IMG/VR virus record: IMGVR_UViG_3300036766_002289
Span: 248,001 to 312,000 of that record
Length of the DNA: 64,000 nt
Strand: one strand, 5' to 3'
Shown here piece by piece: positions 46,562 through 63,810 of this stretch. Numbering within the stretch: position 1 is the stretch's first letter; every line of letters starts with the position of its first letter. The translations under genes were made by a program, and so were the position numbers. Below the pieces are notes generated by a model that saw only the letters and a program-made list of their open reading frames with translations, was not told the origin of the DNA and did not search any database.

Positions 46562-46602
46562 TTGTACCAAATGGCTTGAACGAAATCTAACTGGAGAAAA
46601 AC

Positions 46603-46983
46603 ATGGCGACTTGGACTTGCAGTTGCGAACGGTATTTCCCCGAAACTCAGGAATTGACCAAAAAGGGCGTCAAGAAGAGGATGATGGTGGATGTCCGCAA
46701 GATGAAGATTGAGGGTGATTTCATCGGCACTACCAGCTATGAAGTCAATTACCTCAAGCGTAATGGCGAATTCAAGTTCTATGTCAAGCAGTTAGTCCCG
46801 CCTAAGAAGGAAAAGTGGCCTACCCTAAAACTGAAGGCCGTCATTCTGCTGGACAAGTGGATACGGGAAGTGGCCTATACCCGTGAACAGTTCAAGCAAT
46901 GGTTGGACAAGCGTATTGGGACTGGTGCAGAATCGGCCATTGTCGATTTGATGACGATGCCACCGCAAAACCTTGCTGCATAG
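46603..46983 (+). CDS. hypothetical protein ending -LAA
   Basis: GGAG RBS after a motif copy; terminator follows. Confidence 0.75.
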   Translation: MATWTCSCERYFPETQELTKKGVKKRMMVDVRKMKIEGDFIGTTSYEVNYLKRNGEFKFYVKQLVPPKKEKWPTLKLKAVILLDKWIREVAYTREQFKQWLDKRIGTGAESAIVDLMTMPPQNLAA

Positions 46984-46989
46984 GCAGTT

Positions 46990-47009
46990 AGGGCAATCGC
47001 CCTTTTTTT
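46990..47009 (+). terminator. intrinsic terminator
   Basis: AGGGC-AATC-GCCCT followed by a T-tract. Confidence 0.65.
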
Positions 47010-47034
47010 CTTGTCTAGAAATACTGAAATCAGA

Positions 47035-47062
47035 TTTACAAAACGGAAAGCTAGGCTAGAAT
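47035..47062 (+). promoter_or_regulatory. possible sigma70-type promoter abutting a motif copy
   Basis: TTTACA-16 nt-TAGAAT. Confidence 0.45.
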
Positions 47063-47125
47063 AAGCTTAGTTGTACCTTGAAAATTGCTGCCACGCACAC
47101 TACCATATAACAACGGGGGTGTGAC

Positions 47126-47743
47126 ATGGCAACTAAAGAATGTCTTGGTTGTGGGCCGAAAGAAGAAAATGAATTTGCGGCTGACAAATCGCGTGCAGAT
47201 GGCAAATGTCCATACTGTAAAGCGTGCAGGGCAAAACAAGAAAAAGAAAGACGGAAGGAGCGCGCCGCACTACCTACGCGGATTTGTTATCGGTGTGGGT
47301 TGGAGAAATTAAAGACAGAATTTTCTCCTAAAGAACGGCGTTATAGTAGGTCATTGCTTTGTTTGGACTGCCAGCAATTGGCGGGTGATAAAGCTTATCC
47401 TTTACATTTAGCGGCGTGCAAACGGACTTACGATAAAAGAAAAACAAAGATAAGTCAGCAGAAAAAAGACAAACGAATCGAGTTTAAGTTAGAGTTAATT
47501 CAGTTGGGCGGCGGTAAATGTTTGGATTGCGGGCTAGAATCAAATGAAGAGAATCCGCCAGCTTGTTTTGATTTCCACCATAAAGACCCTAAAGAAAAGA
47601 AATTTTCTGTTGGCAGGGCATTAGGGCACCATGCAAACAAGGATTTGAGTCTCGAAGAAATCAAGAAATGCGATCTTGTGTGTGCGACGTGCCACCGTAG
47701 AAGGCATGTAAACCTTAGTTGTACTAAGGTGGATGAACAATAA
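47126..47743 (+). CDS. HNH homing endonuclease-like protein
   Basis: Zinc-finger repeats; FDFHHKDP...EIKKCDLVCATCHR. Confidence 0.85.
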   Translation: MATKECLGCGPKEENEFAADKSRADGKCPYCKACRAKQEKERRKERAALPTRICYRCGLEKLKTEFSPKERRYSRSLLCLDCQQLAGDKAYPLHLAACKRTYDKRKTKISQQKKDKRIEFKLELIQLGGGKCLDCGLESNEENPPACFDFHHKDPKEKKFSVGRALGHHANKDLSLEEIKKCDLVCATCHRRRHVNLSCTKVDEQ

Positions 47744-47765
47744 CACTTTTTTCAAGGAGTTAGAC

Positions 47766-48755
47766 ATGGTTGCAGCTTTGGAATTGCGTGAAGATGGTAC
47801 TGCCTCAATGGCCTACACTGGTGAAACGCCTTGGCATCGTTTGGGTTCGGCGGTTGATGAGAACATGGCATATGATGCTGAGGGTTTCATCAAGGCGGCT
47901 GGATTGGATTGGGAAGCGGAAAAGGTTCGGTTGCAGACGATGGACACGTTGGAGCCAGTGGACGCATACATGGTGCGTCGGTTGAGTGACAAGAAGAAGC
48001 TGGCGGATTCGGTTGGCCCACGGTATACCATTTTGCAGAACCGTGATGCCTTCAAGTGGTTCCAACCGTGGTTGGATACTAAGGAAGCGGCTTTGCATAC
48101 TGCTGGTGCGTTGTTTGAGGGGAGTCGCATTTGGATTCTGGCCAAGTTGAACCGTGATCCGATGGAGATTGCGGCGGGTGACATTGTGGAGAAGTACGTT
48201 CTCCTAAGTCATTCCCACGATGGGACTTTGGCAATTCGTTGTGGATTTACGCCGATTCGGGTTGTTTGTTGGAACACGTTGAGCATGGCGCACCATGACA
48301 CGGCGAGCAAGTTGATTCGGGTGAAGCATAGCAAGAACGTTATCACGAATATCGAAAACATTCGTGACACGATGAACATGGTGAATGCGGAATTTGAAGC
48401 GACTGCGGAGCAGTATCGGTTGCTTGCTTCTAAGTCCATCAATCAGAAGGACTTGCAGAAGTACATTAAGATGGTATTCGAGCTTGATGGGGTGGACGAT
48501 AAGGATGTGTCCACGCGGAGCAAGAATATCATGGATGAGGTGATCGGTCTTTGTGAAAGTGGCAAGGGGAATAACTTGCCGAGTGTTAAGGGCACGCTAT
48601 GGTCAAGTTACAACGGAGTATCGGAATATCTCAGCTACGTTTCGGGGCGAAATGAATCCAATCGTATGGATTCGCTCTGGTTCGGCAAGGCCAACGGCAC
48701 CAATAAGCGGGCACTGCAAGTCGCTGTGGATATGGCCAATGGAGTGGCTGTATAA
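47766..48755 (+). CDS. DUF932 / LGT_TIGR03299 family phage-plasmid protein
   Basis: MAYTGETPWHRLG...Y.ILQN..AF...TAGAL..G...SHDG...TPIRVVCWNTL...GTLWSSYN. Confidence 0.9.
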   Translation: MVAALELREDGTASMAYTGETPWHRLGSAVDENMAYDAEGFIKAAGLDWEAEKVRLQTMDTLEPVDAYMVRRLSDKKKLADSVGPRYTILQNRDAFKWFQPWLDTKEAALHTAGALFEGSRIWILAKLNRDPMEIAAGDIVEKYVLLSHSHDGTLAIRCGFTPIRVVCWNTLSMAHHDTASKLIRVKHSKNVITNIENIRDTMNMVNAEFEATAEQYRLLASKSINQKDLQKYIKMVFELDGVDDKDVSTRSKNIMDEVIGLCESGKGNNLPSVKGTLWSSYNGVSEYLSYVSGRNESNRMDSLWFGKANGTNKRALQVAVDMANGVAV

Positions 48756-48818
48756 ATAATTTCCAAATATATAACATAATGGGTTGATTTATTTAGCCCA
48801 TTATGTTATATATAGTTT

Positions 48819-49529
48819 ATGGAACATTATTACGTTGAAAGCAAGAAGTGCCCACGTTGCGGCGAAACAAAAGGTAGAGATGAATTTCATAAAGATTCAT
48901 CCAGAAAAGATGGCTTACAAGCCATTTGCGCTGAATGTTCAAGAAAGAAACGACGGGAACAGAGTCGGAAAAACGCTGCACAAATAGAATACCCTTACAT
49001 TGAGTTTAGGGTATGTTCCACTTGTCAAGAAAAAAAGCATCGGTCGGAGTTCGGTAAAGACCGTTACGACAAATATGGTATACGTTGCATTTGCCTTAGT
49101 TGTACAAGAATAAGGAACAGGAAAAACTATGTAAAATATGATCGCCCTGGAGAAGAAGACTCTAGGTCACGCCTATACAAGGCGACTGTCAACGGTAGGC
49201 TTGTGAGCTTGTTAGGTAACGCTAAACGGCGGGCAAAGCTAAAGGGTTTAGATTATGATTTAGACCTACAATGGCTTCTAAATCTGTATCAGATACAAAA
49301 CGGTTCTTGTGTATTGACGGGGTTGCCGTTTTCTTTTGAATTTAATAAGGAATTCAAAAGACAGTTTATGCCGTTTTCGCCTTCACTGGACCGTATTGAC
49401 TCAAGTAAAGGTTACACAAAAGAAAACACGCGATTAGTATGCACGGCAATAAACATTGCTATGAACCATTACGGGGAGAAGACATTTGCGGAAGTGGCGA
49501 CGGCATATTTACAGCGGGTTAAACGGTGA
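48819..49529 (+). CDS. HNH-like homing endonuclease
   Basis: CxxC repeats; CVLTG...SLDRIDSSKGYTKEN..LVC..IN. Confidence 0.8.
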   Translation: MEHYYVESKKCPRCGETKGRDEFHKDSSRKDGLQAICAECSRKKRREQSRKNAAQIEYPYIEFRVCSTCQEKKHRSEFGKDRYDKYGIRCICLSCTRIRNRKNYVKYDRPGEEDSRSRLYKATVNGRLVSLLGNAKRRAKLKGLDYDLDLQWLLNLYQIQNGSCVLTGLPFSFEFNKEFKRQFMPFSPSLDRIDSSKGYTKENTRLVCTAINIAMNHYGEKTFAEVATAYLQRVKR

Positions 49530-50655
49530 TGGAATCTTTTCCCTATCCCCTTTTTTTGTACCTTATAACTTATATGTTAGTTGTACATTGAATTGTGATA
49601 AAGGAAAAGATTTCAAGGGGACAAAATGAAATACAAACTACGATTTCGTGGGACTGACCACATCCTTAATTGGATGGGTCATGAAGTAGCTTTCTCTGAG
49701 TCGGTGGCGGACATGCTGATATGGGATTCGGGTGGGGAGTTGGAGATTGTGTGGCCGCACGATTATCAGATTTAGCTTAGTTGTACCAAATCAAGGTAGA
49801 ATTCCTTACAAAGGAGATGTGATGCAGCTTCCTTCATTCAGCAATTACGGTGGTTATGCGTCGGATAACTATGGGGCGCATACACTTAGGTTCAATCTGG
49901 GGGCGATTTCGGTTTGGTATAGTTATCAGACTGTGGTTGCGTTCAGGGCGGGCCAGAGTGGGGAGTTGCGGGTATTGGACTATAAGGATTCGCAGACTAC
50001 CCGCAAGCATTTGAACAAGATTGATGGCGGTGCGGTGGCATGTCGTCTGAGTAAGGATGAGTTTCAGACGTTGTGGGACAAGGAAGTGAAACCTTACCTT
50101 AAAGCTTAGTTGTACCAAAATTCCCATGAATACATTAGCATGGTGTTTGTTGTTTTTGAATCCGCCCGACCGAACAACTGAGTTTGTCGGTTTAATTACT
50201 GACAAGAATGGGCAACAGGTCCACATTGAACTTGAAGTGAATCAGGTTGCGGTGGGCTATGACATTGTGCAGAATATCATAGTCAAGGTGGACAGGGAAG
50301 ACACTAGCGATTTTCGGGTGCAGTGGGGCCAATATGAATTGTGTACTGACTGCTTCATGGAATACGATGGTTCAGGTTTTGGTTGGGAGCGGCAAGATGA
50401 GTGGGTTGAACTAATCCATGACGGCGAAGTAATTTTCAGAATGTATGTAGCTCACTGGAGATAAAATGATTACTGAGAAGGACATTGCGGATCAGTGCGA
50501 GTTAATTCAGGATGATTTGGCTTGCATTCTGGATGGGGTAGATAATGAAACTTTGAACGCGGTTTGTCAGGTGATCGTGGACAGGCTGGCAATTTTGAAG
50601 GGCAAGATAGCTTAGTTGTACCAATCCCATTGTGATTTAACATAAAGGGGAAAAC

Positions 50656-51390
50656 ATGGCAAAGAAGAGTGACCGTCCGACGTTTGGGGTGCCCGATGAC
50701 ATTCTGCCGTCGTTCAAGCGGTATGTGGTGGCTAAGCAGATTTTCGAGATTGCACAATCCCGAATGGAAGCGGAGAATGGGGCAATCAAGGCCAAGATGA
50801 TTGATAGTTTCACGGATAGTCTGGTGCGTATCAAGCGCCGTCCTGCTAATCCACGTTTGACGTTGGCGGATGCTGGCAAGCCCGACATTGAGGGCCTGTT
50901 TCAGGTGCAGGAAAAGTTTTCTCCGCAAGCTGTGGAGGGTGATGGGCCAGTAGCCGAGCGGTTGAAGACTGCCTTTGTTTCCGCTGGTGTTTCGGCGGAT
51001 ACGGCGGATAAGATCGTGGCGAATGAGGTGGTTTGTGAAGACAAGACTACCTTAAAGCCTTTCAGTGAAATGATTAACGGTGCGCCTATTGAGCAAGAGT
51101 TGGCGGGCCGTTTGATGAAGCTTTTGCTTGATAGCTTCACGGATGATGAGCGGAAGTTGATGATTCAACCCGCGTCGAAGATTGAAGTTAAGGAAGGATT
51201 CTTTGAGCGGTTGGGCATTTACGTGAAGGATAAGGCCGAGGCGATTGGGGCAATTCGTGTGATGAAGCCTGTTCACTTCATGTCGCATATGAAGTTAGGG
51301 CTGAGTGATACACCGCAAGGGCGGTTGAATCGGCTCTATGAGTATAGTAAGGAAATGATTACTGGAGAGGTGCCCCCTTCCAAGGGCTAG
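50656..51390 (+). CDS. hypothetical protein (244 aa)
   Basis: AAGGGG RBS after a motif copy; strong terminator follows. Confidence 0.8.
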   Translation: MAKKSDRPTFGVPDDILPSFKRYVVAKQIFEIAQSRMEAENGAIKAKMIDSFTDSLVRIKRRPANPRLTLADAGKPDIEGLFQVQEKFSPQAVEGDGPVAERLKTAFVSAGVSADTADKIVANEVVCEDKTTLKPFSEMINGAPIEQELAGRLMKLLLDSFTDDERKLMIQPASKIEVKEGFFERLGIYVKDKAEAIGAIRVMKPVHFMSHMKLGLSDTPQGRLNRLYEYSKEMITGEVPPSKG

Positions 51391-51408
51391 GGCCAATCGG
51401 TCTTAGTC

Positions 51409-51440
51409 AACCCTAGTGCTTTCTGCACTAGGGTTTTTTT
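51409..51440 (+). terminator. intrinsic terminator
   Basis: AACCCTAGTGC/GCACTAGGGTT followed by a T-tract. Confidence 0.85.
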
Positions 51441-52359
51441 ATTGTTATAAATTTATAGCTTAGTTGTACTAAAAACCATATGAAACACATTACTGAAGAT
51501 TGTGAAGTTACTGTGGTTGATGGCGAAATTAGTGTGGATTATCGCCATGAGCGGGAAGTGACCATTACTGATAGTAATGGGATTCAACGGTTGCCCGCGT
51601 CGAGTGTTATTCCAGGGCTATCCCGCAATTGGTGGACTGCCAATTGGTCAGGGAGCCAGTGGAACTTGGACCTTGACTGTGGTTGTCAGAGGTTCAATGG
51701 TGTTACAACGACACGTCGCATCAATGAAGCGTTAAAGGTGGCGGGTTTGGACGCTGCTAAGGTTAAGGCAGTGGTGAGTGCAGCTAAGAAAAGGACGCAT
51801 TTTTCGGTAGGTAGGAAAGCTTAGTTGTACCAAATTGAACATGCCGCATTCGACTTCTGGCGAGGTCAGTGGTCCTTCACACCACTTAGACGGGATCGAA
51901 ACCCGTATGCGGTACTAAGGAGTAAACCTATGCCAGTTGAAGCTGTTGAAGGGGTTGATGGGAATTGGACCCTATATGAAAAGGGTGGCTTGCGAGCAAC
52001 GGCACGGGAATTCAAATCGAAGGAATTGGCCTTAGCTTGGGCTGTGAAAAAGGGCTGGAAGATAACTTAGTTGTACCAATTGAAAGGAATGAAGATGCTT
52101 TTCAAAAAGGTTACTGAGGGTTACGTTGAACAGACGTTCAATGATGCTGGGGAGTGTATTGCCCAGCGATTTGTGGCGGGTGAAGTGGAGTACGAGACGG
52201 AAGACGGTGATCCTATCAACGTGATGGATATGCCATTTGGCGGGAGGGAATACTTCCCCTTCGATATGAAGCAGCCTTCCGATGAGTGTTATAAGGAAGG
52301 CTAACTTAGCTTAGTTGTACCAAATCAATTGTGATTTCCTTTACTCAGGAGAATGGACA

Positions 52360-52860
52360 ATGCGGAATTCTTCTTCGTTCGCTGATTCGCTGGTTGAACT
52401 CATTGGCGGGCAGGTTCAGGAGGCCATCAACGATATGGACCTCAGTGACCAGATTGAGAAGGCAATCAGCAATTCCAACGAAATCGAGAAGCAGGTCGAG
52501 AAGCAGGTCGAGAGTGCGATGGATGACCTCGACATTGACGACAAGGTGAAAGATTCGGTGGCGGATTACGACATGAGCGAAGCCATCGAAAGCGTAATCA
52601 AGGACAATTACGATTTCCCCGAAATCTGCAAGGAAGCAATGGATGAGTTGCTGGGACAGCGTGTCAAGGATGAGTTGGAAGAAATCTACAAGTCAGCGGG
52701 TTTCATCGACGTGGTTGATGCGATTGTGCAGCATCGCCTTCATTGGATTGCCGCTGCAAAGCGTGCCAAGTTGGTGGATTATGTCAAGTTTGGCCCGCTG
52801 GTGCGATTTGTGAAGGGCAAGTATGCTGCTCTGGTGCAGTGGGTTGTCAAGAGTCGCTAA
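52360..52860 (+). CDS. acidic helical-repeat hypothetical protein
   Basis: AGGAG RBS; D/E-rich quasi-repeats. Confidence 0.7.
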   Translation: MRNSSSFADSLVELIGGQVQEAINDMDLSDQIEKAISNSNEIEKQVEKQVESAMDDLDIDDKVKDSVADYDMSEAIESVIKDNYDFPEICKEAMDELLGQRVKDELEEIYKSAGFIDVVDAIVQHRLHWIAAAKRAKLVDYVKFGPLVRFVKGKYAALVQWVVKSR

Positions 52861-53153
52861 TTCTTATAAGGGGAATCGCCCATCCCCTTATAACCTGGAT
52901 AGCTTAGTTGTACCAAACATGGAGATGAACATGGAAAGCAAGACACTTTCGCTGGAAGAAGTGGTTGAACGAATTGCTGAGTCACTTCGCCATTCAGAAG
53001 GCGACTTAGTTGCGGAAGTTTACAACGAGGTGATTGGAGGGAATCTGACCTATATGGGTGATTCCTACTTTAATGGGGATGGATAGCTTAGTTGTACCAA
53101 AGTGTGAGTAAGAAACAAGTTTTTCTCTTCTCTTTTTTGAAAGGGTTTTCGCA

Positions 53154-53465
53154 ATGGTCAAGAACGAACAGGTTCACGTCTGCGGTTCCGAGACTTCCAA
53201 GGGCTTCAAGGTGCTGCCGCTTCAGGTTCGGCATCGCAAGGTCAAGGAAGTCAAGGTTGTGAAGGCAAAGGGCAAGGTGGGTCGGCCCCGTGTCTACAAC
53301 GGCACCCATCGTCGCATCGTCGCGGCGGCTCTGAAGAATCACGGCCTTACCAAGGGTCTGGAGTTCCTCGCCAAGGAACGCAAGCTCAAGGTGTCCATGA
53401 CTCTGGCGCTCGCCGTCGCCAAGGAAAACGGGATTGAGTTCAAGCGTGGTCGGCCCGCCGCGTAA
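53154..53465 (+). CDS. highly basic putative nucleic-acid-binding protein ending -PAA
   Basis: K/R-rich; GRPR and RGRP AT-hook-like motifs; GC-rich codon bias. Confidence 0.65.
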   Translation: MVKNEQVHVCGSETSKGFKVLPLQVRHRKVKEVKVVKAKGKVGRPRVYNGTHRRIVAAALKNHGLTKGLEFLAKERKLKVSMTLALAVAKENGIEFKRGRPAA

Positions 53466-53633
53466 AGGAATGGGGGAATCGCCCATCCCCCTTCCCTGGA
53501 GTTAGACTCGGCCCTTCTTGGCTTGTGCCATTAAACGGGAGGCCCGTGGTGGGGCGGAAAAATTTACGGTAGTCTAACTTAGCTTAGTTGTACCAATTAG
53601 ATTGTGATTTCTTTTCTTTATGGAGGGCCAAAC

Positions 53634-53876
53634 ATGGCTCAGTCCGAATTGACCGAGGGTTTCGAGGTGTTTGAACTGCCGACGTATCAGACTTCGGCCA
53701 AAGAGTTTGCGGAGAAGGAAGGCGTTGACTACGCTGTGGCGCAGGGCTTCATCAAGCTGCTTGTGAAGCGTGGCGTGGCCGTTCAGCTTGCTTCCCGCAA
53801 GATTGAAGGGCAGAAGGGCAAGCCGACGAACATTTACGAGTTGCCCACCAATGTCTCTCTGAAGTTGGCTGCGTAG
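53634..53876 (+). CDS. putative winged-helix DNA-binding protein ending -LAA
   Basis: GGAGG RBS; ...L.KRG...GKPTNIY wing-like motif. Confidence 0.55.
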   Translation: MAQSELTEGFEVFELPTYQTSAKEFAEKEGVDYAVAQGFIKLLVKRGVAVQLASRKIEGQKGKPTNIYELPTNVSLKLAA

Positions 53877-53966
53877 TCGGGCATGGTGGTCTGGTGGCAG
53901 GGAGCCATCAGCGTAAGGTAGGCATACACTCCTACGCCACCTTAGCCTAGTTGTACCAGTCACTTT

Positions 53967-54006
53967 GGCTGAGTGGTGGAATGGCAGACACAAACCTTAG
54001 AAAATT
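53967..54006 (+). pseudogene. 5' half of a tRNA-Leu-like gene
   Basis: GGCTGAG-TG-GTG-GAATGGCAGA-CAC D arm nearly identical to that of the downstream tRNA-Leu; no 3' half; starts at motif+10. Confidence 0.65.
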
Positions 54007-54030
54007 TCATATCCTTTACTCTAATAGGAT

Positions 54031-54465
54031 ATGAAAACTTGCCCTATATGTTCTAAGGTGTTTAACTGGACTAAGAATGACGTATGTTCTTCTTGTCGTG
54101 TAGCTTGGTTACGGTATAAACAGCGCTCTAAAGCATACGAAATTCTTGGTAACGAGTGTGTTAAGTGCGGGAACAATGACCAAGACGTATTAACGTGCCA
54201 TCATCGCAAACCAAAAGAAAAATCGTTCATGCTTTGCTCTGCATGGGGTAGTATCGCATGGGAATTGATTGTAGACGAACTGAAAAAGTGCGAACTACTT
54301 TGTGCCAATTGCCATTTGAAATTCCATGCCAACGAGAATCAGAAAAGATTTAAGTTGGTTGAGAATTACTATCGGCCTCATGGTGGAATGGCATACACAG
54401 CAGACTTAAAATCTGCCGCCTATAACGGGCTTGTGGGTTCGAGTCCCACTGAGGCTATTCCTTAG
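54031..54465 (+). CDS. HNH endonuclease (ORF reads through tRNA-Leu)
   Basis: CVKCG...LTCHHRKP...ELKKCELLCANCH. Confidence 0.85.
   Translation: MKTCPICSKVFNWTKNDVCSSCRVAWLRYKQRSKAYEILGNECVKCGNNDQDVLTCHHRKPKEKSFMLCSAWGSIAWELIVDELKKCELLCANCHLKFHANENQKRFKLVENYYRPHGGMAYTADLKSAAYNGLVGSSPTEAIP
54374..54457 (+). tRNA. trnL: tRNA-Leu (anticodon TAA), CCA not encoded
   Basis: Acceptor GGCCTCA/TGAGGCT; D arm GTG/CAC; anticodon arm GCAGA-CTTAAAA-TCTGC; long variable arm; T arm GTGGG-TTCGAGT-CCCAC; discriminator A. Confidence 0.92.
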
Positions 54466-54510
54466 TTGTACCAAAAAGAGCATCAAACCTTTCGCCAGTA
54501 GGAGAGTAGA

Positions 54511-55143
54511 ATGCTTGTGACTGATTGCGAATCGAAACAGATGAAGCACGTTCTTGTACGCTGGTTTCGTCACCTTTTCGGGAAAACTTCTTGGAATGAG
54601 ATTTTTCCTAATCATGATGAGGGATGCGTCACAACGCAAAATAAAGGACGTGACAAATACCATCTCTATGAAAAATGGTTGAAGCGAGTTACGGCTTTTT
54701 TCGTTTCTTCTGATGCAACCTATGAACAAGCGGAGAGTTATTTCATCAAAAAACTACCATCTGAGTGGTGGTATGGTTGTCGGTCGGAATTGGTTGCTAT
54801 CTTGAGCGTGAGTCACAATGCCGCGAAGTGGGTAGCTGCAAATAAAGAGTTGGTTGCCAAGGAAGAGAAAACGTATTTTGATTGTCCCCATTGCGGCGGT
54901 TGTCACGGTTACAAGATTCCCGCAGACACCGATGAAGGCGAAATTACGGTGAAGTGTAAGCAAGAAAATGGCCAATTATTCAAGGTGCAATATGAAAATG
55001 CCAATGACCTTGGATTGACGCCAAACAAGGCAGATATGCCCACGATCATTAAAATCAAGAATTCAAATCGTGCTAGTCAGATTAAGACTGCCTTAGAGCA
55101 TTTGGGATTGGGATTGGGATTGGCACTAACGCCAGCGGCTTAA
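54511..55143 (+). CDS. hypothetical protein with zinc ribbon, ending -PAA
   Basis: AGGAG RBS; CPHC motif. Confidence 0.7.
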   Translation: MLVTDCESKQMKHVLVRWFRHLFGKTSWNEIFPNHDEGCVTTQNKGRDKYHLYEKWLKRVTAFFVSSDATYEQAESYFIKKLPSEWWYGCRSELVAILSVSHNAAKWVAANKELVAKEEKTYFDCPHCGGCHGYKIPADTDEGEITVKCKQENGQLFKVQYENANDLGLTPNKADMPTIIKIKNSNRASQIKTALEHLGLGLGLALTPAA

Positions 55144-55998
55144 CTTAGTTGTACCAAAGGGGGCAATGATGTACCGCGTAGTAACCAGAAACGCATTTGG
55201 TCATGAATTTTCTGTGATGAAAGAAGGAACAAGGGCCGAGTGCAAGCGGTTCATTCTTGGACGGTGGGGACATTGGCCCCCGTTTGCTGTCATTACGCAA
55301 CGGACTGAAAACTTTGAACGGTGTTTCTAACGGAGGAATCCCATGTTTGTGTTGAATGGTTTTTGTCGAAAAGAAGGCGATATGGAGCAGAATTTTAGTT
55401 CAGGCGAGACTGAACTGGCGCTTCATGTGGCCAAAATCTGGCAGAAGTTAGGCTGGCAACCGCGTCTCAAGCATTATGACGGCAGCGGTGTTCATTTCGT
55501 TAATTTCAATCCTCCGCTCCGTAAGGCAGCTTGATGCCAAGGGTTCGCCCACCCTGGTTTTACCTTAGTTGTACCAATCCCTTTAGGAGGCTGTTCATGA
55601 AGACTTGGAAATTTTATGGGTGGGGTGGGGGAAATGTCACTTGTCAAGGTGACACTGTTGTTGATGCACTAAAAGCAAGTGGTGGCTTATTTGAATTTGT
55701 GCGATATGAAGAAGTTGGCAAGGAGCCACAAACAACCGACGATGTTGATTTCTTGCTATATATTGCTGAGCGATTTTCTCGCCAGCTTAGTGGACAAGAC
55801 CAGCGTGAATTTGTGCGGATTTACGATAAATACGCGCCTAATTCAAAGCGAACTATTCTGAAAGAATTGAACAAAGTTGTTATTCACGCGGCATGGGATG
55901 CAAGGAACAACGCCGCCTAATCAGGGTTCTCGCCCACCCTGGTTTTACCTTAGTTGTACCAATTCAAGCAGATTACTCTTCTCTTTCTGGAGTTAGTC

Positions 55999-56508
55999 AT
56001 GCTGACTAAGGACTTCTTGACCGCTGGCAAGGCCATCTTCACCCTCGAAATCCCCCATGACTTCGCCAACAGGAACAACACCAAACCCCATTACACTTGG
56101 AAAGTGTCCAAACCCAAAAACCCTTCCTCATTTCTTTTTGTTTCTCTTCTCACTGGTCCCGATAACACCAACGACTATAAGTATTTGGGTCTTCTCTTCC
56201 CCCGTAATGGCATTGTAAATCTCACGGCCAAAAGCAATTTCGACGCTAAGTCATGGCCTGTCTTGCTCTTGCATCGTATTTGTGCCAACCTTTGGGGCAC
56301 GAACAAGATTGAGGCTAGTGGCTTCAAGCTGCACCATGAGGGTTATTGCTGCAAGTGTGGTCGGCTCTTGACGGTGCCAAGTTCCATTGAAAGTGGAATT
56401 GGTCCAGAATGCGGCAAGAAGGCTGTTTTCTATGGTGCCCCTGTTGTGACGGCAATGGATATTGCCAGCAATGGTGGTATCTATGAAGATGTATATGGGG
56501 GCGATTAG
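55999..56508 (+). CDS. DUF6011 domain protein
   Basis: HEGYCCKCGRLLTVPSSIESGIGPEC. Confidence 0.8.
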   Translation: MLTKDFLTAGKAIFTLEIPHDFANRNNTKPHYTWKVSKPKNPSSFLFVSLLTGPDNTNDYKYLGLLFPRNGIVNLTAKSNFDAKSWPVLLLHRICANLWGTNKIEASGFKLHHEGYCCKCGRLLTVPSSIESGIGPECGKKAVFYGAPVVTAMDIASNGGIYEDVYGGD

Positions 56509-57101
56509 CCCTTATAATAACATACCTTAGTTGTACATTATAAGAAAAGGAGAAACATATGACCTGGCGTGACGTGCTGCGTGGTTTACAGAATATGGGC
56601 AATAGCAAGCTGGATAGTGAAGCATTGCTTTATCTTCCAGCCGCGTTCTACAAGGACAAGGGCGAAATCGTTGCCTTCTCAAGGTTTACGACGATTGACG
56701 GTGACGTAGCTGAGGAGCATGACTGTACTGAGGGTGATCCTATTCTTTTGCGGTATTAGGGATTGCCTAGTTGTACCGAATGTGCTATACTCAAAAGGGG
56801 ATTGTGATGAAAGCGTTTGTATATGAATTCAGGGATGGACAGGCAAAGTGTGGTACGGGCCGTGTTACGCCGAATTATAAGAATTTGGCTAACATGAAGC
56901 GCTATTTCATCCAGAATCTTCCTGCTGGTTGTTACCAAATTCTTGCTTTTTTTGATTGGGACAATCGGTATAAGGATGCTGACATAACCGAAGTGGTTAC
57001 TGTGTATGGTTATCCGCCCGAAGTGACACGGATTTCCGTTCATAAGGGCAAATTGCTTTTGGGCAACGGGTGGATGATACCTTAGTTGTACGGAGAATCA
57101 T

Positions 57102-57521
57102 ATGACTATTCTACTCTTGATGCAAGGTGCTTCTGGTTCGGGTAAGTCCACCAAGGCCGAGGAATTGGCTGTGGAGCTTGATGCCGTCATTTACTCCACC
57201 GACGATATTTTCGCTGAAAGTGGCACGTACATTTTCAATCCGAAGTTGTTGGGTGTGAACCACAAGAAGAACTTGGACCGCACCATTGAGGCATTGAAGG
57301 CGGGCAAGAACGTCATTGTGGACAATACCAATACTCAGCGGTGGGAATGCAAGGGCTACGTTGAAGCGGCTCTGGAGTTAGGGGTAGAGGTTCGCTTCCA
57401 TCGTTGTGTTGGCAATTACCAGAACATTCATGGCGTGCCGAGCTACAAGGTTCAGCAAATGCGTGACCGTCTTGAGGATTTGACGGTTGAAAGCGTCATG
57501 GCGAGCAAGAAGCCTTTTTAG
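57102..57521 (+). CDS. P-loop polynucleotide-kinase-like protein (AAA_33)
   Basis: GASGSGKST, STDD, VIVDNTN, HGVP; ATG at motif+10. Confidence 0.85.
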   Translation: MTILLLMQGASGSGKSTKAEELAVELDAVIYSTDDIFAESGTYIFNPKLLGVNHKKNLDRTIEALKAGKNVIVDNTNTQRWECKGYVEAALELGVEVRFHRCVGNYQNIHGVPSYKVQQMRDRLEDLTVESVMASKKPF

Positions 57522-58848
57522 CTTAGTTGTACCAATTAGGGTATGATTACCTCTAATAGGAGAACGGCGATGAAGATTATCTGGACGGATGCGACGGAGG
57601 CCCAATTGCTCAAAGACACGCCGAAGTTGCTGGAGATTCATGAAAGGGCTTTGAAGTCGGACCCCACATGGGCATTCTTCGGGGGCACAATCACTATCGG
57701 TGAGCATAGCTATCAGATAGCTTAGTTGTACCAATTAGGTTGTAATTCCTTTAACTGGAGAAAGCCATGAAGACTTGCGATTTGAAGTTGGGCGACATTG
57801 TTCACTACAAGGGCAACACTGGCTTCTACATGGACATGACTGTGGTGAGCATTTTCGATGATGAAGTCGTGGTGTGGCGTCCTTATATTTGGATGACACA
57901 AGATGGTCCAGAGTTGAAGACGGAAAAAATTGTCTTCAGCGTAGAATACTCCAAGATGGAGTGGGAAGTCAAGAGTCGCCGCGCCGATTTGAATGCCAAC
58001 CGCGATTGGTACAATTGCGGACATGAGGTACCGAAAAAGGCGGAAATCAGTTGGTGTGGCATAGCCTAGTTGTACCAAATTAGATAACTCTTACTGGAGT
58101 CCAAAATGGACACATTTGAATCAGATGAAGAAGTTGGGCACGAAGAAGAAGTCAAAGAGGCTACGCACAAGGGCGTAATTTTGGCTGAGGATGATTTTGA
58201 GCTTGACCAGCTTGTGGTGGTGCATAGTCTCAAGGGCACGCTTGATACGGCCCCAATTATGGGGCAACCGCTCAAGTTCAAGGCGATTTGTCTGCCCTTC
58301 ATTATTGCCACAATTGTCCTTGAAAATCGGCCAATCACGCTGGACGCACGGTATCTACACTTCATGAAAATCAGTGAAGAGTTTGTGCGGGCGCAAATGT
58401 CCTTGCCGAACCAGCAGCAACAGCAGAAGAAGGGACCGCAAGCATAGCTTAGTTGTACCAACCAAGACGTAACTTAACTCAGTGGAGAGTAGAGATGCGT
58501 TACTTTCTGAAGTTGTCAACGAAGGATGGCTGGTACGAAGAGGTGGACGAATACACCTACAAGAATGCGCCCTACGCTATGGACGAAGGGGGAAATGATC
58601 CCCGTTATTGTGTGGGTGGTATCACCACTGATGGCGTCACAGTGGACGCTGATTTGCGTGGGGTTCCGCTCCGTGACATAGCTATTTTCGCAAGGGCATT
58701 GCAAGCCTTGGAACCAGCAAAGGTTGATGGCGGCTTCATTCGTCCAATGCCCGCGATCATCTTCAAAAAGGGCCGTTCAAACTTCATGCGAACAGCAGAT
58801 GGCAAGGTGTGGAAATCGGTGGCTTAGCCTAGTTGTACCAAAACATTT

Positions 58849-58986
58849 GCCCCTGTAGTGTAAACGGTAGCATACCTAATCACGGTTCTAAGGTAACGGG
58901 AATTCACGTTATGCTTATCATCTGGGAAGTACAACTAGATGCTGCGTGGTTGGTGGAGCAGAAAATCGAAAACTGCCAGGGGCACC
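58849..58986 (+). ncRNA. tRNA-like RNA with anticodon loop replaced by a two-hairpin domain
   Basis: Acceptor GCCCCTG/CAGGGGC + ACC; D arm GTGT-AAACGGTA-GCAT; extended stem 58875-84/58945-53; T-like arm GCAG/CTGC; starts at motif+10. Confidence 0.7.
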
Positions 58987-59098
58987 CTAATCTAATTGAA
59001 ATTTATGACAGAAATAACCTTATACTCGGTCTGATAGTTGGGCGGTAAGCTGAAAAATGCTTATCGCCTCCCATAAAAAGAAACAATGATTTATATTG

Positions 59099-59128
59099 AA
59101 CCGCTATACAGCGTTGTATAGCGGTTTT
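59099..59128 (+). terminator. hairpin/terminator
   Basis: AACCGCTATACA/TGTATAGCGGTT followed by TT. Confidence 0.65.
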
Positions 59129-59510
59129 ATCTATATCTTAGTTGTACAAGGATTGTTATGATTGAAATACTTGACCTTAGCTGTGTGCCAGTTGATGAAA
59201 AGTGCGAGCAGTTGGGAGTCAATTATGACCCCACCAAGGCAATCAAGGAATGCCGTGCCTTCATCCGCCAATTGCGTCGGCAATTCGGTGAGGAACCATT
59301 CGGGGCGCAGTTGAAGATTACGTCCAATCCACATGACTTCGGCACCTATCATGAGGTGGCCGTCAAGTTCCATGACCAATTTGAGGAAGCAGTTGAATAC
59401 GCTTTCAAGTTGGAATCGGAATTGCCCGAAAAGTGGGACGATGGTGCGCTGCGAGAGTTGGGCCTATTTGACCGATTAGTTTCCTAAACCTTAGTTGTAC
59501 CAAAATCCCC

Positions 59511-60608
59511 ATGAACGTACAAGACTATCTTCGCTCTGGCAAGACTCTGGAAAACTTGACTTCCGAGCTTGCTATCAGCGTAACCAAGCATGACTCTCTG
59601 CCGCTGGTCATTCTCAATTATGACCAGATTGATTCGCCTAAGACCAATCCCATCGTGCGGGAATGTCGCGGTCTGGTTCTCCAGTCTGAGAACTATTCGC
59701 TGGTGGCCCGTGCTTTCGGTCGCTTCTTCAATTGGGGCGAAGTGGCTGACGAAATGCCCTTGTTCGACTGGAACACTTGCATTGCCGACGAAAAGGCCGA
59801 TGGTTCCCTTGTCCTCATCTATAACTTTGAAGGCCAGTGGCTTGCCAATACCCGTGGCTCTTTCGCTGGTTGGCCTATCTTCAATGATGAATACAAGGCA
59901 AAGTATTTCGGCGTTGACCCGTCAATGCGCTGGTCCGATGCCTTCCTAAAGGCGCTGAACGTCAACAGCCTTGATGAGTTAAACCTTGACCCGTCCATTA
60001 CTTACGTCTGTGAGTTCTGTTCGCTGTGGAACAAGGTTGTACGGGAGTATCCTACTCCGTGCATGTATCTGTTGACGCGGTTTGCTGGTGAGCAAGAGAT
60101 TGGCCCTTTGACTCATCCCGCATTCCGAACGTTGCAGCGATTTCCCTTGACGAATGTTCAGGAAGTGCAGAACTTTTGCACGGATCATCCCGAAGCAACC
60201 TTTGAGGGGGTGGTTGTGAAGGACTCCAGCTATCGCCGCTGGAAGCTGAAGAATCCGCGATACGTGTCTCTGCACCACATGAAGGGCAATGGGGATGGCA
60301 TGTGGCGTCCTAAGTATATGCTGCCCTATATCCTCAAGAATGAAGGCGATGAACTGTTGACCTACTTCCCCGAAATCACCGAACTCTATAATGAGTATAG
60401 GGATAAGGTGAATGCAGAGTATGTCATGCTGGAGGCGCTCTGGCTGAAGAACAAGGACATTGTGAACCAAAAGGAATTCGCTTTGTCCATTGTGGGGAAG
60501 ACTCCGTTCACTGGTGTTTTGTTCAATCTCCGTAGGGATGGTGGGGATTTGAAGCGGTCGTGGTTGAACCATGAGGATGGAATCTTAAAGGTGCTGTTCA
60601 AAGCTTAG
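59511..60608 (+). CDS. T4 Rnl1-like RNA ligase
   Basis: RECRGLVL, FFNWGE, EKADGSL (motif I Lys), TRGS, EGVVV, KLKN; ATG at motif+10. Confidence 0.9.
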   Translation: MNVQDYLRSGKTLENLTSELAISVTKHDSLPLVILNYDQIDSPKTNPIVRECRGLVLQSENYSLVARAFGRFFNWGEVADEMPLFDWNTCIADEKADGSLVLIYNFEGQWLANTRGSFAGWPIFNDEYKAKYFGVDPSMRWSDAFLKALNVNSLDELNLDPSITYVCEFCSLWNKVVREYPTPCMYLLTRFAGEQEIGPLTHPAFRTLQRFPLTNVQEVQNFCTDHPEATFEGVVVKDSSYRRWKLKNPRYVSLHHMKGNGDGMWRPKYMLPYILKNEGDELLTYFPEITELYNEYRDKVNAEYVMLEALWLKNKDIVNQKEFALSIVGKTPFTGVLFNLRRDGGDLKRSWLNHEDGILKVLFKA

Positions 60609-60615
60609 TTGTACC

Positions 60616-60744
60616 AATTTGGTCTGATGACTCCCACTGATTACCTATGGGGCAGTGCGGTGGAGTTAGGGTGAGCAAGCCCTAGCGAAAAAGGTATAAA
60701 GAGCAACCGTCATTCCGTGGATTTGCTGCACGGATTCTTTTTTC
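60616..60744 (+). ncRNA. candidate small structured RNA with its own terminator
   Basis: Lies between two motif copies with only a 15-codon ORF; stems GACTCC/GGAGTT, CACTG/CAGTG, TAGGG/CCCTA; terminator TCCGTG/CACGGA + T-tract. Confidence 0.55.
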
Positions 60745-61407
60745 CTTAGTTGTACCGAGTTCATCATGGCTGAACTTTTGGTTTGCATCGACAAAGACTT
60801 GATTGAAATTAACGTCACGCATGAACGTGATGGTGGTTTCCCTAATCCAGGGTGGGAATCAGCGGGATGGTTCCCTTCTATTCATGACGCTTTGACCGAA
60901 GGCAAGCTGTGGCTGGACATGGGCAAGGACATGGGCCTCAAACGTGGGGCTAGAAGTCGTCCTCGTTACTGGTTGCAAGCGGCCTAAACCTTAGTTGTAC
61001 CAATTCAATCATGAAACAATTCTACATTGAAGTGATGATGCCGCCCTTCCCGATCAAAGGGAAGAAGTTCAAAGTCTGGTCAACCTATCCTGGCGATGCG
61101 TTGTCGCCTGATTTGACCATGTTGTTCAGCGTATGGGCGTTGGACAAGGAAGATGCAATTTCCAAGACGCTTTCGGGTGAAGCACATACGTTGCTTTCCC
61201 CCAATGCGAAGAAGCTTCAACTAGCATAAGGGGATACGATGATGGGTTGGCAGCGAAAACAAGATGAAAAGCGGAAGCTGAACGGTCAGAAGGACTGGAC
61301 ACGCGAACAGAAGGAGCAAATGAGGTTGTTTCTGAAGCAGTATCCACAAGGAGGGGAGCATGACCGAGAACGGCGAAAAGCTGGATGACCTTTGGATTGA
61401 TTTGGGC

Positions 61408-61439
61408 GGGGAAGGCTAAAAGGGGCCTTCCCCTTTTTT
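61408..61439 (+). terminator. intrinsic terminator
   Basis: GGGGAAGGC/GCCTTCCCC followed by T7. Confidence 0.85.
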
Positions 61440-62089
61440 GTTCCTATAATTAGCTTAGTTGTACTAATTAGGCTGTGATTCCTAAAACAGGAGCAGAACA
61501 TGAACGAACGACATGCGGGAATTCCGTGGATACCTGAAGCAATGCACGGATAAGCAGGTGCAAGGCGTCTACGATAAGGAAAACGAAGCTGACCGCGACA
61601 ATTACGCAGAATTGGCGATTGCGGAAGCAGAACGTCGTGGCATTATGCTGGACCTTAAACCTTAGTTGTACCAATTAGGCTGTGATTTAACCCTTGCGGA
61701 GGATCGTCATGGGTAACATCGAAGCCTTGGAAATGGTCGCCGTTCTTGCCAATTCGGCCCGCGAACAACTCTTGAAGGGCGAAAAGCCCTGCATCAGCAA
61801 TCTCAACCGTATCATCCACCTTGCCGTGACCGTCGAACGGGAATTCGATGAACAATGGCAAGCGGAAGGAGAGAAGAATGAGAATTGCAGTTGATTACGT
61901 AGACGGGGACTATAGGGAATATAATAGCCTCGAAGCTGCCGTCGAATTCATCATGGACCATGAGGCCGAAGTAGAACGCATCTATGAGGTTGACGTGGGC
62001 CAAGCTAAAATCAAAGAATACGGGTGCGAATGGAGTTTGAAGCTGGTAGAATTATAGCTTAGTTGTACCAATTAGGTTGTAATTAACCC

Positions 62090-62181
62090 CAAACAGGAGC
62101 AAGGTCATGCGTTATTGGATTCGTCACGAAGACCTCAAACAGGAGCAAGGTCATGCGTTATTGGATTCGTCACGAAGACCT
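62090..62181 (+). repeat. perfect 46-bp tandem duplication of RBS plus first codons
   Basis: 62090-62135 is identical to 62136-62181; CAAA microhomology at the junctions. Confidence 0.9.
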
Positions 62182-62398
62182 CAAAACGGCAAATTATTGT
62201 GACAACTATGATTGCCCGCTTGCACGGGCCGTCAAGCGGAAACATCCCCTCGTCCATGTCCAAGTCAATTCCCGCTATGTTTTCATGAACGGCAAGGCTT
62301 ACCACATTGCCACGCCGTCCGCTGACAAGCTGCTGTCATGGTCATGCAAAGAAATCATTCTCGACAAGGGCTTCCATGTCCGTCTCAGTGCGGCCTAG
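62153..62398 (+). CDS. hypothetical protein ending -SAA (paralog of 62919-63215)
   Basis: Shares MRxWIRxxDLxTANY...DCxLARAxKRK...KGFHVRL. Confidence 0.75.
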   Translation: MRYWIRHEDLKTANYCDNYDCPLARAVKRKHPLVHVQVNSRYVFMNGKAYHIATPSADKLLSWSCKEIILDKGFHVRLSAA

Positions 62399-62918
62399 TT
62401 TCAGGGTTCGCCCAACCCTGGCTTTACCTTAGTTGTACCAATTAGGTTGTGATTTCTTACCCTTTACCTGGAGTCTTGACAATGGGCAATGCTTTCCGTC
62501 TGGCCAAGCTGCTGGTGATCGAGAATCCCAATCGTTCCGCCAAGTCCATCCGAGAGGAAATCGAGAAGATGACGGGCATCAACCTCGATGGCCGCGTGAT
62601 CGGCGGCGAGAAGCGCATCCTCATCTATCGCAAGGGCAAAGCGGCCTAAGCCAAGGGGTCGCCCACCCTGGCTTAACCTTAATGGAGAAATCCCATGAAT
62701 GAAGAACTCAAAATCAAGCTCCACGAAATGCTCGAATCGTATTCAAGTCAACTTGATACGATTTGGTATAACTCTGATTCGGGTTCGCACATGGATTGGT
62801 GCCGTAGGCAACAAGCTGAGATTGCCGAACTCATTGCCGAACTCGAAGCTGTTGACGCGATTTGCTGGTAGGCATAACTTAGTTGTACCAATTAGGTTGC
62901 CCAAAACAGGAGAATACA

Positions 62919-63215
62919 ATGCGTTTTTGGATTCGTCTGGCTGACCTCCGAACGGCGAACTACAGTAGCAATACGGACTGCTTTTTGGCCCGCGCCATCA
63001 AGCGTAAAATCCCAAAGGCTAAGGTTCTGGTCCATCCCGATTTTGTCGAGGTGGGTAAAACTCACTACGCGATTGTCGGCAATGGAGTGGACCGACTCAA
63101 AGAGGACCATGACACCAAGGAAAAAGGCTTCCACGTCCGACTCCGTAAAGTGAGTGGCTGGCTAGAGTGTAACCAAGCGAAAGCCGCAATTGACCACATC
63201 AGGACGTTCAATTAG
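62919..63215 (+). CDS. hypothetical protein (paralog of 62153-62398)
   Basis: AGGAG RBS; shared motifs as above. Confidence 0.75.
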   Translation: MRFWIRLADLRTANYSSNTDCFLARAIKRKIPKAKVLVHPDFVEVGKTHYAIVGNGVDRLKEDHDTKEKGFHVRLRKVSGWLECNQAKAAIDHIRTFN

Positions 63216-63264
63216 CTTAGTTGTACCAATTAGGTTGTGATTCAACCCAAACAGGAGAACGGCC

Positions 63265-63393
63265 ATGTTTGAAGTCATTCGCAACGGCAAGGTTCTGTTC
63301 CGCAATGCTTCCTATCAGCGTTGTCTCCAATTCAAGGCCCGCCACAAGCTCAATGCCATCATTCGGCCCATGCCCCAAATGCTCGCGGCCTAA
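63265..63393 (+). CDS. 42-aa basic protein ending -LAA (absent from the ORF track)
   Basis: AGGAG RBS; MFEVIRNGKVLFRNASYQRCLQFKARHKLNAIIRPMPQMLAA. Confidence 0.7.
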   Translation: MFEVIRNGKVLFRNASYQRCLQFKARHKLNAIIRPMPQMLAA

Positions 63394-63671
63394 GCCAAGG
63401 GGTCGCCCACCCCTGGTTCTATACCCTAGTTGTACCGAGGTTCACATGCTTATTCCCCGCGCCGTAGTGTTTGATTCAAAAGGCAAAGCTCTTTGTGCTG
63501 GCAATCCCTGCAATGGTTACTCTCATCGCACCGACTGCCGCCATACGACCATGCACCTACCATCGGAACATTTCGATTTTATCGACGTGAACGTGGAAGG
63601 CAAGACTGAGGCCGAAATCATGTATGAAATCACGGCGGAATACCACATCTAAGGGCCATTCAGGTCTGAGT

Positions 63672-63810
63672 TGAGAGTGGCTTAAAATAGGAGCAAACCT
63701 ATCCGTGGCCGCATTAACTTCGGTTAGTGCCCGCCCAAGAAAGTAACGGGAGCCAACGGGAAACACCCTCCAAAAGTGGATTACCAATGACTCATCAATA
63801 ACCGCTCTTA
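63672..63810 (+). ncRNA. candidate multi-hairpin structured RNA
   Basis: Closing stem TGAGAGTGG/CCGCTCTTA; ATAGG/CCTAT; GCATTAAC-TTCG-GTTAGTGC; GGG/CCC; TCCA/TGGA. Confidence 0.6.

Follow-up and report, generated by a model that had tools for sequence, protein, structure and literature searches.

In a clade of huge sediment phages that carry their own ClpX and ClpP-like genes, about one in six proteins encoded in the promoter-dense region, which is taken to be early, ends in a conserved Ala-Ala. This is the signal that ClpXP uses to select proteins for destruction, so these phages probably build short lifetimes into part of that protein set, as inferred from sequence. We first examined a window of 64,000 nucleotides, positions 248,001 to 312,000 of the IMG/VR record IMGVR_UViG_3300036766_002289, in which a sequence-only reading had listed ten proteins with Ala-Ala C-termini. 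All ten ends were confirmed on well-formed genes, and the observation is stronger than originally described. Each ORF is preceded by the promoter-like motif and/or a GGAG ribosome-binding site, and is followed by a terminator hairpin or the next promoter. Some start codons needed small corrections, for example 62482 rather than 62449, 53634 and 55597, which do not alter the ends. The promoter-dense region runs to about window position 69 kb, 5 kb past the window end, and holds an eleventh case.

Table 1. Ala-Ala-ending genes of the promoter-dense region and associated features (window coordinates).
Position	Strand	Length	C-terminus	Description
46603..46983	+	126 aa	PPQNLAA	Predicted beta domain plus a long C-terminal helix, with a flexible last 8 residues
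53154..53465	+	103 aa	KRGRPAA	DNA-binding-type protein; two GRP (AT-hook-like) motifs around a predicted three-helix bundle
53634..53876	+	80 aa	SLKLAA	Orthologue in the related phage G001 ends RLKLAA; homologues on L045-L047 end the same way
54511..55143	+	210 aa	ALTPAA	TAA stop lies in the 5' part of the next promoter motif; only a weak zinc-ribbon hit; no orthologue in the two related phages
55343..55534	+	63 aa	PLRKAA	Followed by a hairpin terminator
55597..55920	+	107 aa	ARNNAA	Followed by a hairpin terminator
60766..60987	+	73 aa	YWLQAA	ATG lies exactly 20 nt after the motif (leaderless-type); TAA stop lies in the next motif
62153..62398	+	81 aa	VRLSAA	Followed by a hairpin; paralogue 62919..63215 is longer and does not end in AA
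62482..62649	+	55 aa	RKGKAA	Followed by a hairpin
63265..63393	+	42 aa	PQMLAA	Followed by a hairpin; G001 orthologue ends SQMLAA, using GCT GCT instead of GCG GCC
66377..66619			LPAA	Eleventh case, past the window end
55535..55564	+			Example of the GC-rich hairpin (GGGTTCGCCCACCC type) that follows five AA-ending genes; others start at 55924, 62404, 62655 and 63399
59511..60608	+		LFKA	RNA-ligase-like gene whose end is supplied by GCT-TAG of the next promoter motif

Next, we tested whether these ends are enriched, as the sequence-only reading had proposed. Within the window, 0 of 126 called genes in positions 1-46000 end in AA, against 10 of 39 in 46000-64000, confirming the earlier claim that none lie to the left of 46 kb. 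Across the 390-kb phage genome, 11 of 60 genes in the dense region end in AA compared to 6 of 659 elsewhere (Fisher p 4.6e-9) using a home-made gene caller, while a second caller gave 11 of 56 against 6 of 673 (p 1.8e-9), and 0 of 365 among genes of 130 aa or less elsewhere. The internal AA dipeptide frequency, 0.7%, predicts about 0.4 such ends (binomial p about 5e-13). GCNGCN-stop 9-mers on the + strand number 13, against 3.65 +/- 1.9 in second-order Markov simulations, and 11 of the 13 are real gene ends, whereas off-frame and minus-strand counts are at background. The earlier statement that varied Ala codons are used is only partly right. Seven different codon pairs occur, but GCGGCC occurs four times, and one 28-nt block comprising the AA-stop and hairpin is identical at 62641 and 63385, so a few cases are not independent.

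The excess recurs in related sequences. The related huge phage LR756511.1 has 7 of 45 (binomial p 6e-9). The second related huge phage, G001, has 8 of 56 when called on the 21-kb locus L015, and 8 of 92 against 6 of 622 genome-wide (p 9e-5). Eleven metagenome contigs give 19 of 119 after removing the anchor gene (p 5e-17).

Comparison of orthologues indicates that selection acts on the protein. Orthologues at 40-70% identity keep AA while Ala codons, stop codons and tail length change. In reciprocal-best-hit pairs, AA is kept in 14 of 18 pairs with at least one AA member, whereas the last dipeptide is the same in only 8 of 31 non-AA pairs. All 7 homologues of the 126-aa protein end in AA, as NLAA or NLEAA, and this family uses, for example, GCT GCA TAG, GCG GCA TAA and GCA GCG TAG. 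For the 63-aa protein, both orthologues end RKAA although the tails differ, and 6 of 7 library homologues end in AA with tails of different length. In the family of the 103-aa protein, 56 of 58 members end in AA, with 0-4 variable residues between a fixed RGRP and the AA. These tails read RGRP-AA, -KAA, -AAA, -KIAA, -VAA, -KVAA and -KQKKAA, and the other two members end in VA, which is also read by ClpX. Thus, AA tracks the terminus and not the alignment column.

We modelled two of the eleven proteins with AF2. The last 8 residues of the 126-aa protein have low pLDDT and no regular structure, and residues 93-103 of the 103-aa protein are coil, so the tails are predicted to be accessible and unstructured in these two models. 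The AA tails carry a net positive charge of +1.1 against +0.1 for other genes of the region. Over the 26 tails of the three phages, L is the commonest residue at -5 and R at -4, while -3 is L in 7, K in 7 and P in 4. This partly matches the E. coli consensus [LFYW]-[LAR]-L-A-A (PMC10862746). In E. coli, Ala-Ala is necessary but not sufficient, Leu or another hydrophobic residue at -3 and a tail of 5 or more residues favour recognition, and Pro, Gly, His or short polar residues at -3 weaken tags (PMC10862746); among the eleven tails here, -3 is Pro in 3 and N, Q or S in 3. These rules are those of E. coli ClpX, which may differ from the ClpX that would read the phage tails.

We then investigated the proteolytic machinery encoded by the phages. 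All three encode a full-length ClpX (E 2e-130 to solved ClpX structures) with an N-terminal C4 zinc finger, an AAA+ module and a small C-terminal domain (Pfam zf-C4_ClpX, AAA_2 and ClpB_D2-small). The GYVG, SITRDV, GGRKH and SIGFG motifs are present in each, the last containing the IGF loop for ClpP docking. The phage ClpX thereby retains the six residues that set Ala-Ala-COO- recognition in E. coli, namely pore-1 Tyr and Val, pore-2 Thr and Val, and RKH Arg and His (PMC7652416). The phage ClpX itself ends in EAA in all three phages; either not every AA end is a degron or ClpX is self-limiting. All three phages also encode a ClpP-like peptidase (Pfam CLP_protease, 71.6 bits) with an intact triad, in which Ser lies in MSAG, His in MLH(D/E), and the acid is Glu in two phages and Asp in LR756511.1. 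Its gene does not sit among head genes. The N-terminal 50 or so residues are divergent and lie outside the Pfam match, and a prediction of the complex gave no answer, so docking to ClpX through canonical N-terminal loops and IGF pockets is unproven.

We propose, with moderate confidence, that the terminal Ala-Ala-COO- is a short, portable C-terminal degron of the ssrA-like (ClpX C-motif-1) kind, kept by selection on about 15-25% of the small proteins made from the promoter-dense, probably early, counter-defence region of this phage clade. In this view, the exposed tail would be bound after synthesis in the axial pore of a ClpX hexamer, either that of the host or the phage's own, and the protein would be unfolded and fed to ClpP or the phage ClpP-like peptidase. 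These proteins would therefore act only for a limited time, with the rate tuned by the residues before the AA. Our analysis establishes the enrichment, its restriction to real gene ends, the protein-level conservation across the clade, the flexible tails in two models, and the presence and residue conservation of the phage ClpX and ClpP-like protein. In contrast, that ClpX binds these tails, that ClpX-dependent degradation follows, that the region is early, and which ClpXP acts are inferences. The phage is known only from sediment and soil metagenomes. In support of ClpX as the reader, an E. coli screen of random C-terminal tags found terminal Ala-Ala in 91% of the top 100 degrons, with consistent enrichment only in strains that had ClpXP (PMC10862746).

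The interpretation in the sequence-only reading is thus partly supported. Its core idea of built-in ssrA-like degrons, by analogy with the ssrA tag and Caulobacter CtrA, is the best-supported reading, while its description of early takeover proteins is inferred. Its two alternatives, programmed short life or saturation of host ClpXP, cannot be separated by sequence, although a phage-borne ClpX and ClpP-like pair fits programmed turnover better. It had also suggested that the -IA and -KA ends supplied by the motif belong to the same phenomenon, which is not supported. The ends at 50109, 51824, 57725, 58069 and 60608 are real, but come from GCT/GCC-TAG inside the motif as a DNA-level by-product and are not kept in orthologues; for example, the RNA ligase end LFKA is LFK in both relatives.

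We considered other explanations. It is possible, but unlikely, that the AA-COO- end is read by something other than ClpX, either another protease that accepts non-polar C-termini (ClpAP, FtsH, Lon, a tail-specific or PDZ protease) or a phage protein that binds C-termini for localisation, packaging or assembly. Protein-level conservation shows only that the terminus is read, not by what, four E. coli proteases can recognise ssrA (PMC10862746), and Pro or polar residues at -3 are poor for E. coli ClpX. However, the ClpXP requirement in the E. coli screen and the Ala-Ala-reading residues of the phage ClpX argue against this, although a phage-encoded alternative reader such as SspB, ClpS, Lon or a PDZ protein is not excluded on present evidence. 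Slightly less likely is that many abundant AA-tailed proteins act as decoys which occupy host ClpXP or its adaptors, sparing other phage proteins or host proteins useful to the phage, so that the tails matter as inhibitors rather than timers. The evidence for ClpX recognition applies equally here, and the many different small proteins carrying the tail would be expected if mass action is the point. Yet the phages add ClpX and a ClpP-like peptidase of their own, which raises capacity rather than blocking it, and a decoy needs one abundant protein, not tails conserved family by family over long divergence on specific families such as the AT-hook protein.

A DNA- or RNA-level origin, in which GCNGCN before the stop belongs to a terminator or promoter cassette or a copied 3' module, is largely refuted. 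The four GCGGCC-TAA/TAG occurrences, the duplicated 28-nt block, the motif-derived single-Ala ends, and the five of six GGGTTCGCCCACCC-type hairpins that follow an AA stop are consistent with it. However, AA persists through codon changes and tail indels, AA ends show no significant association with hairpins (p 0.14 and 0.40), and relatives with a different promoter motif show the same excess. Chance, composition (the region is GC-richer, at 47-50% GC, with Ala at 7.8% against 6.1% elsewhere), paralogy or gene-calling artefact is refuted by the statistics above, the agreement of two callers, the absence of BLASTP similarity among the AA-ending proteins, and replication in 13 other sequences.

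As in ssrA-type tags, there is a free C-terminal Ala-Ala on a tail predicted to be unstructured, a partial match to the upstream preferences (L at -5, R at -4, L at -3) and a ClpX with the recognition residues, but the tail is encoded in the gene rather than added by tmRNA or exposed by cleavage, sits on roughly a sixth of one viral gene class, and often has K or P at -3. Caulobacter CtrA-type cell-cycle substrates likewise have a genetically encoded C-terminal AA on a regulator whose activity must be confined to a time window; CtrA needs adaptors and localisation, whereas here there are many unrelated small proteins and no evidence for adaptors. Alanine tails added by ribosome-quality-control rescue are also ClpXP degrons (Lytvynenko 2019, cited in PMC7652416), but are added after translation to stalled chains, while here exactly two Ala are templated and conserved. 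Among phage substrates of host ClpXP, lambda O (cited in PMC11242549) and MuA also have their amount or activity set by ClpX, but these are single proteins with other recognition signals, in contrast to a shared AA signal across a gene class. ClpX and ClpP genes have been annotated in other jumbo phages (Iyer et al. PMC7824862; phage G, PMC12484599; AP-J-162 and Atu_ph07, PMC11242549), but the papers found propose no substrates, degrons or purpose for them. Here, clpX and the clpP-like gene are not adjacent (about 160 kb apart in genome G000), and a simple sequence rule, ending in Ala-Ala, picks out a conserved candidate substrate set in the same genomes, which makes the question directly testable.

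A more speculative reading, which we hold only tentatively, is that this clade runs a self-contained proteolytic timer, in which the shared Ala-Ala degron marks a defined subset of early, counter-defence proteins and a phage-encoded ClpX and ClpP-like protease, made from a different promoter class, clears them at the switch to later stages. The AA-tagged genes would then be the first candidate substrate set for a virus-encoded ClpXP. If the tails turn out not to be degraded, a conserved C-terminal signal with an unidentified reader would remain to be explained. If the degron reading is right, C-terminal dipeptide statistics would become a cheap way to find short-lived regulators and anti-host factors in uncultured viruses, natural tails of graded strength would be provided for degron engineering, and temporal control in these phages would work partly by programmed protein removal rather than by transcription alone.

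We first characterized the genome that carries the Ala-Ala ends. The window is bases 248,001–312,000 of a 390,039-bp virus record. The genome has 39% GC, 48 tRNA genes and no tmRNA gene, and its baseplate and tail proteins are of the myovirus type. The only relative in the phage collection is the 595-kb uncultured phage LR756511.1, with 56% amino-acid identity in a baseplate protein. The runs that hold the sequence are sediment and soil metagenomes, so it is probably not one of the "Jug" gut phages (PMC12880540). The window's 126-aa AA-ending protein is recorded on a contig of 590,099 bp, whereas the present record is 390,039 bp and classed as "provirus". The record may be a trimmed part of a larger genome comparable in size to LR756511.1. 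One tRNA has a CUA anticodon (amber-suppressor type, labeled Pyl by ARAGORN). Coding density is 0.90–0.96 under code 11, so no recoding is indicated, and many genes of the promoter-dense region stop at the TAG inside the motif.

The promoter-like motif, TAnnCTTAGTTGTACCAA, occurs 101 times on the + strand and 5 times on the - strand. It is dense from about window 32 kb to 69 kb, running 5 kb past the window end, and from about 46 kb onward the GC content rises to 47–50%. The DNA there is a chain of units, each comprising the motif, a GGAG ribosome-binding site or an ATG exactly 20 nt after the motif, a short ORF, and then a hairpin or the next motif. The motif comes in two forms. In one, the ATG lies exactly 20 nt after the C of CTTAG (leaderless-like). 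In the other there is a leader, CCAATTAGGkTGTrATT..., whose TTAGGGT/ACCCTAA arms can pair just before the GGAG-ATG. An exact-pattern scan of viral contigs for the 19-nt motif found nothing; relatives use variant cores (CTTAGCTGTACC, AAAGCTGTAC, CCAGCTGTA and GTTGTACCT). This variation suggests a phage-specified recognition factor that co-evolves with the motif. Sequences resembling tRNA 5' halves directly follow promoters at two sites, but ARAGORN does not call them even at a relaxed threshold, and one ORF that overlaps tRNA-Leu is probably not a gene. Rfam found nothing relevant in window 44–64 kb.

Next, we examined the observation of the sequence-only reading, that ten proteins of this region end in Ala-Ala and none among the genes left of 46 kb. 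The observation held: all ten Ala-Ala-stop ends are present at the coordinates given in that reading, and the ORFs that carry them have the unit architecture described here. We built two gene callers, a periodic Markov model for the bulk genome and a codon model trained on motif-anchored ORFs for the GC-richer region. With the first set, 11 of 60 region genes end in AA against 6 of 659 elsewhere (Fisher p 4.6e-9). With the second, the counts are 11/56 against 6/673 (p 1.8e-9), with 0 of 365 among genes of 130 aa or less elsewhere. Inside the window, the split is 10 of 39 genes right of 46 kb and 0 of 126 left of it. The eleventh case ends LPAA and lies past the window end. The internal AA dipeptide frequency in the region is 0.7%, which predicts about 0.4 such ends (binomial p about 5e-13). 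At the DNA level there are 13 GCNGCN-stop 9-mers on the + strand, against 3.65 +/- 1.9 in second-order Markov simulations, and 3 on the - strand. Eleven of the 13 are real gene ends. The few AA-ending proteins outside the region include a PARP-like protein with a WGR domain, an AAA ATPase with the motif upstream, and an ArdC-N plus metallopeptidase protein. Of four such loci, three, but not that of the ArdC-like protein, have counterparts ending in the same tail in the second relative, G001.

Coordinates of the features discussed, in window or genome numbering as indicated (L001 and L009 are loci with their own numbering).
Feature	Coordinates	Strand	Remark
Promoter-dense region	window 32941-64000 and on to about 68700		Two forms of the motif
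Leaderless-like examples	window 50106->50126, 59491->59511, 60991->61011		Motif to ATG
RGRP-AA family protein	window 53154-53465		Two GRP (AT-hook-like) motifs flanking a three-helix bundle
tRNA 5'-half-like sequences	window 53955-54030 and 58840-58900		Directly follow promoters
ORF overlapping tRNA-Leu	window 54031..54465 (tRNA-Leu 54374-54457)		Probably not a gene
P-loop kinase (AAA_33) and T4 Rnl1-type RNA ligase	window 57102-57521 and 59511-60608		In the dense region together with tRNA genes
46-nt tandem duplication	window 62087-62178		Copies the ribosome-binding site and first codons of gene 62153..62398; leaves an out-of-frame decoy start at 62107
Paralogous pair	window 62153/62919		Only one of the two ends in AA
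Identical 28-nt blocks	window 62641 and 63385		AA-stop plus hairpin
Eleventh AA-ending gene	window 66377..66619 (L001:2377-2619)		Ends LPAA
AA-ending genes outside the region	genome 161952..163583, 202276..203346, 204173..205060, 109942..110724		
Phage ClpX	genome 157854..159158 (L009:1120-2424)		434 aa, ends EAA
tRNA with CUA anticodon	genome 170512-170586		Labeled Pyl by ARAGORN
ClpP-like peptidase	genome 319591..320202	-	Just right of the dense region

We then asked whether the signal resides in the DNA or in the protein. Some DNA-level copying exists: GCGGCC occurs four times and a 28-nt block made of AA-stop plus hairpin is present in two identical copies. Comparison with relatives, however, shows that selection acts on the amino acids. 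LR756511.1 has an analogous promoter-dense region in its first 19 kb with a different motif (AAAGCTGTAC), and 7 of 45 genes there end in AA. A second relative, IMG/VR contig 3300003310_000099 (G001, 373 kb, collinear with this genome), uses the motif CTTAGCTGTACC. In a 21-kb locus of G001, 8 of 56 genes end in AA, while genome-wide the counts are 8/92 in the region against 6/622 elsewhere (p 9e-5). Among reciprocal-best-hit pairs across the three phages, AA is kept in 14 of 18 pairs with at least one AA member, whereas the last dipeptide is identical in only 8 of 31 other pairs. Ala codons and stop codons differ between orthologues.

The AA also stays at the terminus when the tail changes length. 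The NLAA family ends NLAA or NLEAA in 7 of 7 members, and the RKAA family keeps AA in 6 of 7 members on tails of different length. In the RGRP family, 56 of 58 members end in AA, where the conserved RGRP is followed by AA, KAA, AAA, KIAA, VAA, KVAA or KQKKAA, and the two exceptions end in VA. This family of small proteins is widespread on huge metagenome contigs (up to 623 kb) and is sometimes labeled "transposase" by JGI. Eleven further metagenome contigs, found through the RGRP family, carry motif variants, and after excluding the anchor gene 19 of 119 genes end in AA (p 5e-17).

An association between AA ends and terminator hairpins was not significant (p 0.14 and 0.40), and RNA pairing of GCGGCC with the downstream hairpin, or small hairpins spanning the stop, inspected by eye, are not general. 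The single-Ala ends (-IA, -KA), which the sequence-only reading had noted as supplied by the motif, do come from GCT/GCC-TAG inside the motif but are not conserved; the RNA ligase, for example, ends LFKA here and LFK in both relatives. Paralogy was rejected as a cause, since the AA-ending proteins show no similarity to one another by BLASTP and the only hit involving one of them is to a paralogue that does not share the ending. The ten AA proteins gave no significant Pfam family.

We next considered what could read the tail. In E. coli, the Ala-Ala-COO- dipeptide is the most important element of the ssrA degron and is bound by ClpX through Tyr153 and Val154 (pore-1), Thr199 and Val202 (pore-2) and Arg228 and His230 (RKH) (PMC7652416). 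In a random C-terminal tag screen, Ala-Ala was present in 91% of the top 100 degrons, and consistent enrichment was seen only in strains that had ClpXP. Ala-Ala was necessary but not sufficient, and Pro, Gly, His or short polar residues at -3 were disfavored (PMC10862746). AF2 models of two AA proteins put the last 8–11 residues outside regular structure. The tails are net basic, and L is commonest at -5, R at -4, and L or K at -3, which partly matches the E. coli consensus.

A search of the phage genome identified a full-length ClpX, which has the zf-C4_ClpX, AAA_2 and D2-small domains and matches solved ClpX structures at E 2e-130. The GYVG, SITRDV, GGRKH and SIGFG motifs are all present. 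The phage ClpX itself ends in EAA in all three phages, and in this genome its TAG stop lies in the 5' part of a downstream promoter motif. A ClpP-like peptidase carries Ser, His and an acidic residue at the triad positions. Its neighbors are a phosphatase, a SprT-like protein, a HAD-domain protein and a CCA/poly(A) polymerase, not head genes. Both genes are conserved in LR756511.1 (72% and 62% identity) and in G001 (85% and 82%), and neither is directly preceded by the motif. Prediction of a complex between phage ClpX(60-434) and the ClpP-like protein returned no answer (score 0.00), which is not evidence either way.

The region looks like an early, counter-defence block. It holds DUF932, an RNA ligase plus a P-loop kinase, tRNA genes and many ORFans, each with its own promoter. 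The kinase and ligase, with the tRNA genes and the HAD "RNA repair" protein and CCA/poly(A) polymerase just to the right, look like a tRNA-repair, anti-anticodon-nuclease kit. ssrA-like AA degrons and phage-encoded ClpX and ClpP are both known (PMC7652416, PMC7824862, PMC12484599, PMC11242549). In our literature searches we found no paper linking a class of phage proteins to an encoded AA degron, or proposing substrates for a phage ClpXP. This is therefore a new use of a known signal, and it gives a concrete, testable list of candidate substrates.

Our comparisons firmly establish that a C-terminal Ala-Ala is under purifying selection on a sizeable subset of the region's proteins across this phage clade, whereas recognition by ClpX, the ensuing degradation, pairing of the phage ClpX with the ClpP-like protein and the early timing of the region are inferred from sequence and models alone, without experimental data. 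Some features count against a degron: Pro or polar residues occupy -3 in about half the tails, the phage ClpX has its own EAA end, and the N-terminus of the ClpP-like protein is divergent. The interpretation of the sequence-only reading, that early takeover proteins are programmed to be short-lived or else saturate host ClpXP, is supported in part. The most economical reader is ClpX, whether of the host, the phage or both, so the tails are most likely degrons that limit the lifetime of these proteins. A phage-borne ClpX and ClpP-like pair fits programmed clearance better than saturation of the host enzyme.
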